Source of the DNA: Mytilus trossulus
Lineage: Eukaryota
Direction: 5' to 3'
DNA: 64,000 nucleotides
Assembly: GCF_036588685.1 (NCBI RefSeq)
Contig: NC_086385.1
Location: 9,176,001-9,240,000 of the forward strand
The position numbers and the translations under genes were made by a program. Below the pieces are notes generated by a model, which was not told where the DNA came from, did no database searches, and saw only the letters and a program-made list of their open reading frames with translations. Numbering within the stretch: position 1 is the first letter of the stretch; the number at the start of each line of letters is the position of its first letter. This document shows, one piece after another, positions 7,320 through 18,140 of this stretch.

Positions 7320-7535
7320 ATGGCTGATTCGAAAGAAGAGATTAATTATTGGCGGATTATAAGTCTGCTGTACAAAGTTGCTCCTTCTGCTGTGAGAGTT
7401 AAATTTGACAAAGAGTTCATCCAACAAATGGACTTGAGACTGCTTTACGGGAGGGCAAGTGGCGAGTCTTAGAACCATTAAAAAGAAAGAGGATCATCAA
7501 CCAGGTCCAGTGGGATTTAATGTATCCAACGTCAG
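7320..7535 (+). CDS. Coding exon 1: N-terminal helices of the DZIP3-like HEPN region (frameshifted)
   Basis: Acceptor tcttag at 7301-7306, ATG at 7320. Reads MADSKEEINYWRIISLLYKVAPSAVRVKFDKEF, then after a shift HPTNGLETALREGKWRVLEPLKRKRIINQVQWDLMYPTSG, ending at donor G|GTAAAT (7535/7536). The 'EE.NY.R...LL....AVR..FD.EF' and 'IIN..QW..L.P' motifs are typical N-termini of bivalve HEPN_DZIP3 proteins. Confidence 0.8.
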
Positions 7536-10500
7536 GTAAATTTCAATTTTATTTGGGATAATGATATAATTTTCCTATATTTTTTTTTCATTAACACATA
7601 TTTGATGGTCCAATGCAAGTGTCAATGTCTCCAATATTATGTAAGTAATCAAAACATCGCTAAGTCATACATTTGAAAATCAGTATAAAACTTGCTCACT
7701 CTACTTCAGCCAATGAATGTACTGCTACAACCAATATTAAATGAGAACTACCTGAGATCACCCCTAGTATTAGGTGGTGTTCGTATTGCTTATTCTATAG
7801 TTTTCTATGTTGTGGTCTTGTGTACTATTGTTTATCTGTTTATCTTTCATTTTAAGTCAAGACGTTGTCAGGTTTTTTTTCGATCTATGAGTTTTACTGT
7901 CTCTCTGGACTCTTTTGATCCTCGTTTATTCGCGTTCAAAACTGAAATTCACTATTGAAACCGGGTTTGTCTTAACATTTGTTCCCCTATTTTTATTGTC
8001 ACAGATTCTTAAGTTGATATCCCTATAAAGCTATAAAAATGTATAACATTGCTGCTTCAATCATCCATTTTGGGTCTAGTTGTCGATAACCAGGTTTTTC
8101 TATGGTACAAAGTAAAATCACAAAAGTACCGGTACCGTAAATGTCTTCTCGGGTCCAAATAGGCGAAGAAAGTGAAAAAAAACATATTGGAAGTCACTTA
8201 CGAAATATGACTTTGATGAGTACTTTTAATCCGCACAAAAAAAGTGCGTACGAATTATAACTAAAATGAAACCATGCATTAGGGAAATTGCAATGAAAAT
8301 TGTTGGATTTCTGATGAACGTGTGATGAAAACGTAAAGTTTTTTATGAGGAGGTTGAAAGAAATAAAAGCGACAGTAGTATACCGCTGTTCAAAAGTAAA
8401 AAAAAATGAGAGCAAACATCAGGGTCAAAAACTAATAACGATGGAAACACATTAACTATAAGTGGGAAACAACAAACAACTGAAACACTAAAGTGCAACA
8501 AATCAAACGAAAATGCATCATATTTAAAACGAACTATTAGATAACAACTAACATATTCCTGACTTAGTACAGGACATTTTCAGAAAACAAAATGAGGGTC
8601 TAACCTGTTTTGTGAATAGCTTCACCTCGCGCTTTATGGCAAGGTTAAATCTATCACTACACTGACATCATTACAGGACAAGTATACAGTTAAAAAAAAA
8701 AAGCACTCAGGACAGGAAAATACATAAATAGATAATATAATTGTATATTTCGACATGTTGATCACAGATTAAAAACGAATACCTTAACTTAATAAAGGAC
8801 AATACACAAAAGCAGCAAAATAGAATGCGAACTGTGTGTCACACAAATGTATCACTTTCAGCTATTTTGACGTATGTTTAAGATTTTCAATGTATGGTCT
8901 CAGCATCATTAAATGGACACTAATTGTTCCATTAAATTGATACTGGTTATTATGCATTGCATATGTTAAAAGTAATTGGTATTGTAATGCAATTAAGTCA
9001 TGACTTGTCTCGAGCTCTTTTGTTTGTACGTTGGTTTGCACAAATATTTGACTTACAATGATTCTACAAAGCTTCATTTGTTTTCAGTTTCGGCTTCATT
9101 TACAAGCCAAATATTGTATTCGTCTTGTAAACTAGGTTTAAATTCCTTTTTTTTCATGAACATTGATTATAAATAAAAGAAAACATTTTTTTTTTCATTT
9201 ATTGCTTTTACCAAAACAATCAACATTTTTTTGTCAAAAATCAAAGTTAAACATTAAAATAACGTTTATCTTTTCACCATTTGCATTGTTGATGACGACA
9301 TGAATGTGTATTTCTACTTTAAACATTAATTGTTTAAGGAAGACTTAAATGTTCATATTTTTTTTACCAATGGCAATGCAATTGGGAATATTCCTAAATG
9401 CAATTTTGGTAATTTGCATCGGTCGCATGAACGATCATGTATACGCAAAATTGTTCATGCTGTATATAAAGAAAATACTAATTAAACTCAGTTCGAAAAC
9501 GAAATTTACCACCATTCTTTTAACTATAATTTGTGTAGGAAGTGTATGCAAAAGAAATGTTAAGAAGTTAAAGTAAGTGAATTTAAAGAAAAAAAAATGT
9601 TTGAGTCAAAAGTTTAGTATTCTATGAAATTGAGAATCGTCTTTCGCAAGACGTCGGAACCAATGTCTCTAACATGTTCCAATTCCAATCGAAGGGTAGG
9701 GTTTTGTGTAAAACAGCTTTGGCGTGACGATACCCTACAGCCTGATTACAGATGTCAACTTAGAAAGGTACGCGTATCTGACAGTTTGAACAATACTGCA
9801 GATGAGTAAGTTTTCCTTTGCGGATTTAATAAATTAGCAGCCCGGCCTAGCCAGCATTATCTATATAAACACAAAGACTATATGCCATGATTGTATACAA
9901 TATGTTTGTCTTGAACACGCATGCACTGTTTGCCACTAGACGTTAAGCAACCCAAAATCAATCAACAAATGATAAAGCTACCCGAAAAGTTCAAATGAAG
10001 TTGTTTTTAGCATTATAGGCATTATATGAAATTGTCGAGGAATACTAGAATAAACCACACATTCCTCATATAAAAAAAGAAATATGGTATGATTGTCAAT
10101 GAGACAACTACCCACAAAAAGACAAAAATGACACAAACATTAACAATATAGGTCACCGTACGGCCTTCAACAACGAGCAACGCCCATACCATGCACTGAT
10201 ATGCCATTTTCTTTAAGTTTTGATCGTTTTTTTATGAGAAAGCATAGGGTTTTCAGTGTAGATTTCTATTTTTTATTTTTTATTTGTATCGATGGTATAT
10301 TTAAAAAGGAATGTGTCAGTTCATCCGAAGATTCTCCAACTGAATTATTTATATAAAACTTAAATTTAATATTCAAACACGTCAGAGAACAGTTAATAAG
10401 ACCACCTTCAAAAATATAAATACACGCATATTCATAAATGTTTTTAATTGTTTTATTATTTATATGATATTTGTGATGCATCAGATTAAACATTAAAATA

Positions 10501-17731: not shown

Positions 17732-18140
17732 TACAACTGTGATCTAAATATCTGCAAATATTCTTTTAATGAACCCCTTTTATTTATTGCTTGTCAGGAG
17801 GGTCATATTCAAATTGTAAAATTATTATTGGAATGCAATAGTAATATGACACTTGATGACAAGGAAAACTTTGCATCCATAGCGATGATGAATGGTCATA
17901 CAGATATTGCGAAACTGGTGAAAGAACATGAATGAGGCTGTAATATATTTAAAATAGAAAAGAATAAGTTGTATCTACTACTAATAATAATGGTCATGTT
18001 GATACTGCAAAATTGTTTCCAGTAGACAACTACAATCTGACAATTTGTAATTTAAAACAACATGAATCATCTTTATGCATTGCTTTGAGGGTGGACCATC
18101 CTGGTTTAATGAGACTATTGTTAAAACTTGAATTCCCTTA
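17732..18140 (+). pseudogene. Ankyrin repeats downstream of the premature stop (in frame to 17935, then decayed relics)
   Basis: After the TAA the same frame reads YNCDLNICKYSFNEPLLFIACQEGHIQIVKLLLECNSNMTLDDKENFASIAMMNGHTDIAKLVKEHE*. Further downstream another frame reads NGHVDTAKLFPVDNYNLTICNLKQHESSLCIALRVDHPGLMRLLLKLEFP*. Confidence 0.8.

Follow-up and report, generated by a model that had tools for sequence, protein, structure and literature searches.

The DZIP3/hRUL138 family of HEPN domains, in which the Rx4-6H motif is mostly conserved, was described by Anantharaman et al. (2013; PMC3710099). That study reported animal fusions of DZIP3-type HEPN domains to ankyrin, TPR, NACHT, CARD, DEATH and LRR modules, with expansions in Nematostella, oyster and Capsaspora, and compared such fusions with RNase L and with bacterial proteins in which HEPN is joined to a STAND (signal transduction ATPase with numerous domains) module. 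More than 50 HEPN_DZIP3-NACHT proteins were later found in the pearl oyster, where degradation of viral or transposon RNA was proposed (Takeuchi et al. 2022; PMC9646362), and a HEPN_DZIP3 head was reported on coral NLRs (nucleotide-binding leucine-rich-repeat receptors), again with a proposal of RNA degradation (Noel et al. 2023; PMC10236652). A defence role for animal HEPN_DZIP3-STAND-repeat proteins has thus been published in 2013, 2022 and 2023, and the concept is not new. Here we analyse LOC134694064 of the mussel Mytilus trossulus, which lies on the + strand of a 64,000-nucleotide stretch of contig NC_086385.1 (positions 9,176,001 to 9,240,000; hereafter the window, in whose numbering coordinates are given) and combines a HEPN_DZIP3 head, an nSTAND3 NTPase and an ankyrin array. 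Taking the data as a whole, the best explanation is that this locus is a four-exon member of a large bivalve family of NLR-like STAND proteins that evolves by birth and death, and that this copy has most likely been disabled recently or truncated at its N-terminus. A literature search returned neither a paper that describes HEPN, nSTAND3 and ankyrin in this combination nor a functional study, in agreement with a first-pass annotation, made from the DNA sequence alone, which had known of no functional characterisation.

The locus can be set beside several described systems. With the HEPN_DZIP3-NACHT proteins of bivalves and cnidarians, the Mytilus family shares an N-terminal PF18738 domain, an Rx4H motif (RN...H), the effector-STAND-repeat layout, lineage-specific expansion in tandem, copy-number-variable loci, and a function proposed from sequence only. 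It differs in having nSTAND3 (PF20720) rather than NACHT, and ankyrin repeats rather than LRR, TPR or WD40 repeats. The second comparison is with Avs5, a SIR2-nSTAND3-TPR protein whose NTPase has been described as nSTAND3 (bioRxiv 10.1101/2025.07.08.663546). Here the shared features are the nSTAND3 Pfam family and an effector-STAND-helical-repeat layout, and Avs5 filaments are among the Foldseek matches of the modelled STAND module (E of 5e-6 to 6e-6). However, the Mytilus effector is HEPN and not SIR2, the gene is eukaryotic and spliced, and identity to Avs5 is 13-15%, Avs5 standing no closer than NLRC4 or NOD2; the likeness to the latter two is confined to the STAND fold, with 11-12% identity. 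PADLOC profiles gave no Avs/AVAST match, only the candidate system PDC-S73 (E = 1.5e-8) and weak P-loop matches, and the Pfam profiles for NACHT, LRR, CARD, PYD and DEATH had no match at E up to 0.1. Because there is no PADLOC Avs match and no Pfam NACHT or LRR, the gene, which resembles Avs or an NLR on paper, is a member of neither. The first-pass annotation had called it NLR/Avs-like, and this label is apt for the effector-STAND-repeat layout, the nSTAND3 NTPase and the STAND fold; it does not reach as far as an Avs profile or a NACHT, LRR or death-fold domain. The three domain families that it had named, HEPN_DZIP3, nSTAND3 and Ank, are all matched in Pfam.

Three further likenesses are more distant in kind. 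The bacterial HEPN-STAND proteins of Anantharaman et al. (2013) also join an N-terminal HEPN to a STAND NTPase and repeats and are also proposed defence nucleases, but they are prokaryotic and carry another HEPN family; the comparison with them is at superfamily level. RNase L shares an ankyrin ligand sensor and a HEPN-superfamily RNase that is active on dimerisation, and it acts in antiviral RNA decay (PMC3710099 and general knowledge). Its domain order, however, is reversed, it has a pseudokinase switch and a KEN-type HEPN, and it is a single-copy gene; the likeness is one of analogy. Human DZIP3/hRUL138 is the founding member of the HEPN_DZIP3 profile, but that protein is a RING E3 ligase with TPR, has no STAND module and no ankyrin array, and its RNase activity is not established.

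LOC134694064 is a real gene, annotated in RefSeq before this analysis. Its RefSeq product, an "uncharacterized protein" of 1096 aa (here P0001), was the 100% identical match of exon 4 in a protein database search, and the exon set 7520-7535, 11463-11680, 13149-13293 and 14820-17731 translates exactly to P0001. Exons were searched individually, with P0001 as the stand-in for the joined protein. A single + strand gene spans 7320-17935; all of its introns are GT-AG, and exons 2, 3 and 4 join in phase. Ancestral exon 1 (7320-7535), defined by tblastn with homologs P0003 and P0004 and by three-frame translation, holds a start codon at 7320 and the first HEPN helices and ends at a donor GT read from the DNA at 7536-7537; the part that is coding in RefSeq is 7520-7535, where the protein starts MYPTSG in exact agreement with the N-terminus of P0001. 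Exon 2 (11463-11680; acceptor AG 11461-11462, donor GT 11681-11682) encodes the HEPN_DZIP3 core matched by Pfam PF18738. Exon 3 (13149-13293; acceptor AG 13147-13148, donor GT 13294-13295) encodes the last HEPN helix and a helical linker to the NTPase. Exon 4 as annotated (14820-17731; acceptor AG 14818-14819) encodes the STAND NTPase module and 16 ankyrin repeats, both identified with Pfam, and ends at a premature TAA. In terms of open reading frames (ORFs), the nSTAND3 and ankyrin matches in Pfam fall in the 974-aa ORF at 14807-17731, and a small ORF at 11444-11692 carries the HEPN_DZIP3 match and includes the motif RNKFAH. Three small exons had been predicted to splice in phase onto the 974-aa ORF: the splice sites and the match to P0001 bear this out for exons 2, 3 and 4, while exon 1, read from ATG 7320, runs into a stop within the exon.

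This stop follows from the first of two lesions. Intact homologs from M. edulis (P0003), M. galloprovincialis (P0007) and M. californianus (P0004) begin with MADSKEE or MAESKEE, as does the window at ATG 7320. In tblastn, however, residues 1-33 of P0003 and P0004 align to 7320-7418 and residues 31-73 align to 7409-7537 in another frame. Since the homologs switch frame between 7409 and 7418, exon 1 in the window is one base short there relative to them, and the frame from ATG 7320 is terminated by TAG at 7470-7472. This frameshift is why the RefSeq model takes the internal ATG 7520 as its start. Neither a very short intron nor another start codon accounts for the frame change: the second frame has upstream stops and no ATG, and no GT-AG pair fits. 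P0001 as it stands spans only positions 31-141 of the 144-position HEPN profile, and by the HEPN model described below it has lost a long first helix together with three shorter ones. A complete HEPN domain in one frame is not encoded by this copy.

The second lesion is an in-frame TAA at 17729-17731 (+ strand), which breaks the sixteenth ankyrin repeat at a site occupied by E or Q in its sister repeats. Past it, in the same frame, lie two further ankyrin repeats (17732-17935, + strand; Pfam Ank_2 E of 2e-8 for this piece alone), closed by TGA at 17933-17935, and the alignment of homologs continues through to 17950 (tblastn). The range of 16-18 repeats given in the first-pass annotation, and its end coordinate, are accounted for by the frame running past the early TAA to this TGA: there are 16 repeats up to the TAA and 18 when the frame is read to the TGA. 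At 17516-17829, the TAA-bearing repeat and the next one share EGHIQIVKLLL, within a 99-bp, 3.1-copy tandem array suggestive of a unit having been duplicated recently at the gene's 3' end.

As the sequence flanking the lesions is still close to that of the homologs (91% identity in exon 1 before the frameshift), both lesions appear to be either young or artefactual. The latter would undercut the reading of the locus as a disabled copy, and so do two further points: the lesions are known from the assembly alone, with which an assembly or haplotype artefact is compatible, and RefSeq classes the locus as protein-coding. The alternative is a copy that works as annotated or better, whether because the lesions are assembly or haplotype artefacts or because the internal ATG 7520 gives a working protein. 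In a variant of this alternative, the protein could act as a sensor or regulator that pairs its crippled HEPN head with intact paralogs; helper/sensor pairs are known among plant NLRs. The protein-coding RefSeq model with its 1096-aa ORF, the nearness of the lesion flanks to homologs (before the frameshift and, in the Ank_2 match, after the stop) and the intact NTPase motifs all speak for such a functional copy. Against it stands the loss from P0001 of the long first helix, three more HEPN helices and profile positions 1-30. Moreover, the missing base lies outside any long homopolymer, which makes sequencing error less likely. The nearest paralog also bears on the question. It lies 74 kb downstream (C13:9256241-9270258; L038:4242-4460 and L039:44-8258), is closest to M. 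californianus P0004, and has exon 1 in one frame, but its frame changes at the start of the ankyrin array (L039:5179-5184), leaving a shortened open frame of 442 aa. This tandem paralog may be a second damaged copy, and its state is in keeping with a decaying locus. We consider the functional-copy explanation unlikely, and function in this particular copy doubtful.

The STAND module gives no sign of such damage in its motifs. The nSTAND3 profile (PF20720) scores 79.4 bits against a cut-off of 27.2 (E = 3.1e-22) over residues 22-171 of the 974-aa ORF, which places the P-loop domain at 14870-15319 (+ strand). Walker A (GPSGCGKS) lies at 14936-14959, Walker B (VFVIDD) at 15071-15088, the sensor Arg motif (LLSCR) at 15188-15202, and the winged-helix ILHD with its conserved His at 15710-15721, all on the + strand. 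The first-pass reading of a STAND NTPase with these four motifs (the last as LHD) is thereby upheld, with the profile above its cut-off and every motif located. In a 23-protein family alignment, GCGKS of Walker A is invariant, and most of the proteins retain DD of Walker B, the sensor Arg (SCR/SSR) and the His-Asp of the winged helix. H299 of ILHD, just past the winged-helix hairpin, is conserved at 90% or more. An AlphaFold2 model of the whole module (14822-16180, + strand; 453 aa, 35 homologs in the alignment) contains nucleotide-binding, helical and winged-helix domains and further helices, with a mean pLDDT (predicted local distance difference test) of 90.3 and a pTM (predicted template modelling score) of 0.83.

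The best PDB matches of this model in Foldseek are NLRC4, NOD2, Avs5 filaments (9nc9, 9jap), NLRP3, NLRP14, SAMD9, Dark and Avs4, with E values of 3e-6 to 4e-5. By VIA-align, NLRC4 reaches Z 13.2 (root-mean-square deviation (rmsd) 4.8, 308 residues aligned), MalT 12.7, NLRP3 12.4 and the NB-ARC of NRC1 12.2. In these alignments STAND chains span 266-332 residues and plain AAA+ chains only about 190, within the first 210 or so. On these matches it is a true STAND module with a winged helix, the conserved His sitting at the place of the MHD-type His. A PDB search with the sequence of the NTPase module returned only ankyrin, DARPin and generic P-loop matches.

The HEPN head was identified most firmly by its profile. 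Exon 2 alone scores 52.1 bits against HEPN_DZIP3 (PF18738; cut-off 27, E = 7.8e-14), P0001 scores 63 bits and the intact homolog P0003 91.6 bits. The Rx4H motif, RNKFAH, is read directly from the sequence at 11603-11620 (+ strand) and has the form Rx4-6H with a polar residue after R. A DZIP3-type HEPN with an intact Rx4H had been proposed; the family match and the motif stand, and the domain of this copy is incomplete. In the genome, RNxxxH is retained in 28 of the 30 closest paralogs, most of which match up to an identical intron position, so that conservation of Rx4H in paralogs, on which the earlier reading had also relied, is found. The 23-protein alignment (A1) has N and H of the motif in every sequence and R at 90% or more, and the motif is conserved in alignment A3 as well.

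In every copy inspected, the HEPN domain is split over three exons. A single-exon copy was sought for folding, and the longer open frames around seven paralog exons turned out to be intron read-through only. The HEPN fold model is that of an M. edulis HEPN-only protein, P0107 (205 aa, 45 relatives, pLDDT 86.1), and not of the window's own split domain. In a VIA wide search of 48,161 chains, its best match is the HEPN domain of Streptococcus mutans Csm6 (Z 7.6, rmsd 3.4, 111 residues aligned), a Z within the range that chance alone can give among helical bundles. The top 50 include about nine chains of HEPN type, among them AbiF, two Cas13, a second Csm6, MtlR, HepS and Thermus 1wwp. The fold comparison with P0107 is thus supportive and not decisive, the profile match being the stronger evidence.

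Self-association of the head was modelled on P0003, the nearest of the intact homologs found, with residues 1-200 present twice. The homodimer scores 0.76, against 0.00 for the best of three controls. Of proteins solved as pairs of one chain, 21 of 30 reached the mark applied to such scores, and of those solved as single chains none of 23 did; on eukaryotic proteins it was reached by 17 of 29 pairs (7 of 16 from animals), by only 1 of 7 that lack an older solved relative, and by none of 30 single chains. The runs share at least 83% of contacts, and the partner pLDDT is at least 86. The confident interface comprises residues 3-26, 61-67, 78-84, 129 and 158-187 and lies for the most part on the first helix and on the linker helix encoded by exon 3. 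Residues 174, 178 and 181 make symmetric contacts, and residues 158-187, equivalent to exon 3, account for most of the interface. This model supports self-association of the HEPN head, through an interface whose confident contacts leave out R and H of the Rx4H motif. P0001 lacks residues 3-26 and 61-67 of the predicted interface, a further point against a functional copy at this locus.

For the intact members of the family, we envisage a sequence of events in which the variable ankyrin surface would bind a ligand, the nSTAND3 module would exchange nucleotide and oligomerise like other STAND proteins, and the HEPN heads would thereby be brought together or re-arranged into an active RNase. Cleavage of RNA by the clustered heads would then lead to translational shutdown or arrest, or to cell death. 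This full chain from ligand through oligomer to RNA cleavage is inferred from sequence and is put forward tentatively, at somewhat less than an even chance. Under the same reading, intact Mytilus members would be ligand-gated ribonucleases that detect pathogen molecules through hypervariable ankyrin surfaces. They would be an animal parallel to bacterial Avs or abortive infection systems and to plant-style NLR repertoires, with the effector enzyme built in, and broken copies such as LOC134694064 would record rapid turnover of the family. We hold this wider picture to be a possibility somewhat short of probable.

Several results weigh against the nuclease step. R120 and H125 of P0003 are absent from the confident dimer contacts, and a composite active site is for that reason not supported by the dimer model. 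The expectation in the first-pass annotation that RNKFAH motifs might meet in a multimer is thus matched only in that a homodimer is predicted above controls, the two residues falling outside its confident contacts. With the P0107 model, Foldseek finds no significant match in the PDB (best E 0.86), and the VIA Z of 7.6 is below 8, within the chance range for helical bundles. Moreover, RNase activity is not reported for any HEPN_DZIP3 domain in the searchable literature. In an alternative reading, the HEPN_DZIP3 head would be an RNA-binding or protein-adaptor module with no nuclease activity, and the family would signal by recruiting factors; the want of any reported RNase activity speaks for this. 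The RNA-binding RING ligase human DZIP3 is a suggested precedent for such a head, some HEPN families are catalytically inactive (PMC3710099), and the predicted interface involves the first and linker helices and not the Rx4H helix. On the other hand, dozens of paralogs that evolve fast have almost all retained R, N and H of RNxxxH amid varying neighbours, the pattern expected of a catalytic site, and 194 of 202 pearl-oyster HEPN_DZIP3 proteins retain Rx4-6H (PMC9646362). A non-nuclease head is in our estimation rather unlikely.

The putative sensor is a regular array. Sixteen ankyrin repeats of 33 aa occupy 16151-17728 (+ strand; Pfam Ank families with E down to 1e-109, and the repeat listing), and in the DNA the array appears to TRF (Tandem Repeats Finder) as a tandem repeat with a period of 99 bp. 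Across the 14 regular units, P2, A6, L18 and L19 never vary, and entropy peaks at positions 8, 9, 11, 12 and 29-33. The peak positions fall at the start of helix 1 and in the hairpin, which are known from designed ankyrin proteins to form the binding face of the repeat. Variation in the array is thus concentrated on the face that ankyrin repeats canonically use for binding.

The interest lies in the family rather than in the copy at LOC134694064. The M. trossulus genome holds at least 150 significant matches to HEPN exon 2 among 269 candidates and at least 93 nSTAND3 modules among 471 candidates, 92 of them free of internal stops in open frames of 390-1872 aa. When the two genome lists are compared, at least 37 HEPN exons are followed on the same strand, at a distance of 1-13 kb, by an nSTAND3 exon. 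Proteins that combine PF18738, PF20720 and Ank number more than 50 in M. edulis, M. galloprovincialis, M. coruscus, M. californianus and M. trossulus, and one in the oyster Saccostrea cucullata, and the Atlas contains several mollusc nSTAND3-ankyrin clusters of 69-202 members. The family is large, mostly intact and expanded in Mytilus.

These data also bear on whether the family is immune at all. Its members might instead be nSTAND3-ankyrin scaffolds for trafficking or the cytoskeleton, with the HEPN head serving RNA metabolism; in favour of this there are only automatic names (ankyrin-1-like, ANKRD50, PP6 regulatory ankyrin subunit), and these reflect ankyrin similarity. Such scaffolds sit poorly with hundreds of copies in tandem clusters, with an architecture confined to bivalves within the searches made, with variation focused on the ankyrin binding face, with broken copies amid intact ones, and with a STAND fold closest to NLRC4, NOD2, NLRP3 and Avs5. 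Owing to the expansion, clustering and surface variation, a non-immune role is the weakest of the alternatives, and we regard it as very improbable. Expansion, bivalve restriction, binding-face variation, broken copies and an NLR/Avs-like fold are together typical of receptor families in host-pathogen conflict.

LOC134694064 is accordingly best described as a real, annotated and probably damaged member of a known, experimentally untouched class. By itself the locus yields little: a clean gene model of four exons, a minimum count of the family in the genome, and pointers to intact relatives such as P0007, P0003 and the M. trossulus paralogs P0252 and P0226. Should intact relatives turn out to be RNases activated by a ligand, no animal NLR-like receptor would have been shown before them to have a nuclease effector of its own. 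Such a result would connect the logic of bacterial Avs and abortive infection to RNase L and to innate immunity in animals, and would help to account for the size of mussel immune repertoires.

Some minor features of the locus and the window were also recorded. Protein identity of exon 2 to the nearest M. edulis proteins, P0003 and P0092, is only 75-76%, compared with 88% for exon 3 (tblastn, P0003 residues 145-196) and 91% for pre-frameshift exon 1; paralogy, a fast-evolving HEPN core or relaxed constraint are possible reasons. In intron 1, a 165-bp unit is present as a tandem duplicate (11093-11426, 93% matches) that ends 37 bases before exon 2. An intronic in-frame ATG at 11444 reads MLYIKTG, and the M. 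edulis model P0092 opens with identical letters. P0092 may be the nearest M. edulis counterpart, likewise modelled without exon 1. Elsewhere in the window, a 138-aa ORF at 1337-1753 is a translated CTGT-rich tandem repeat (period 29/79) and not a gene. At gathering thresholds, Rfam found no RNA family in 1-64000 and no hammerhead ribozyme, the intervals 24458-26375 and 31733-32140 included. A satellite array with a 164-167-bp unit (26603-31328; 28.6 copies, 81% matches) accounts for the GC-rich block at 26-32 kb, and a shorter array at 32136-32654 is apparently the reverse complement of the same unit.

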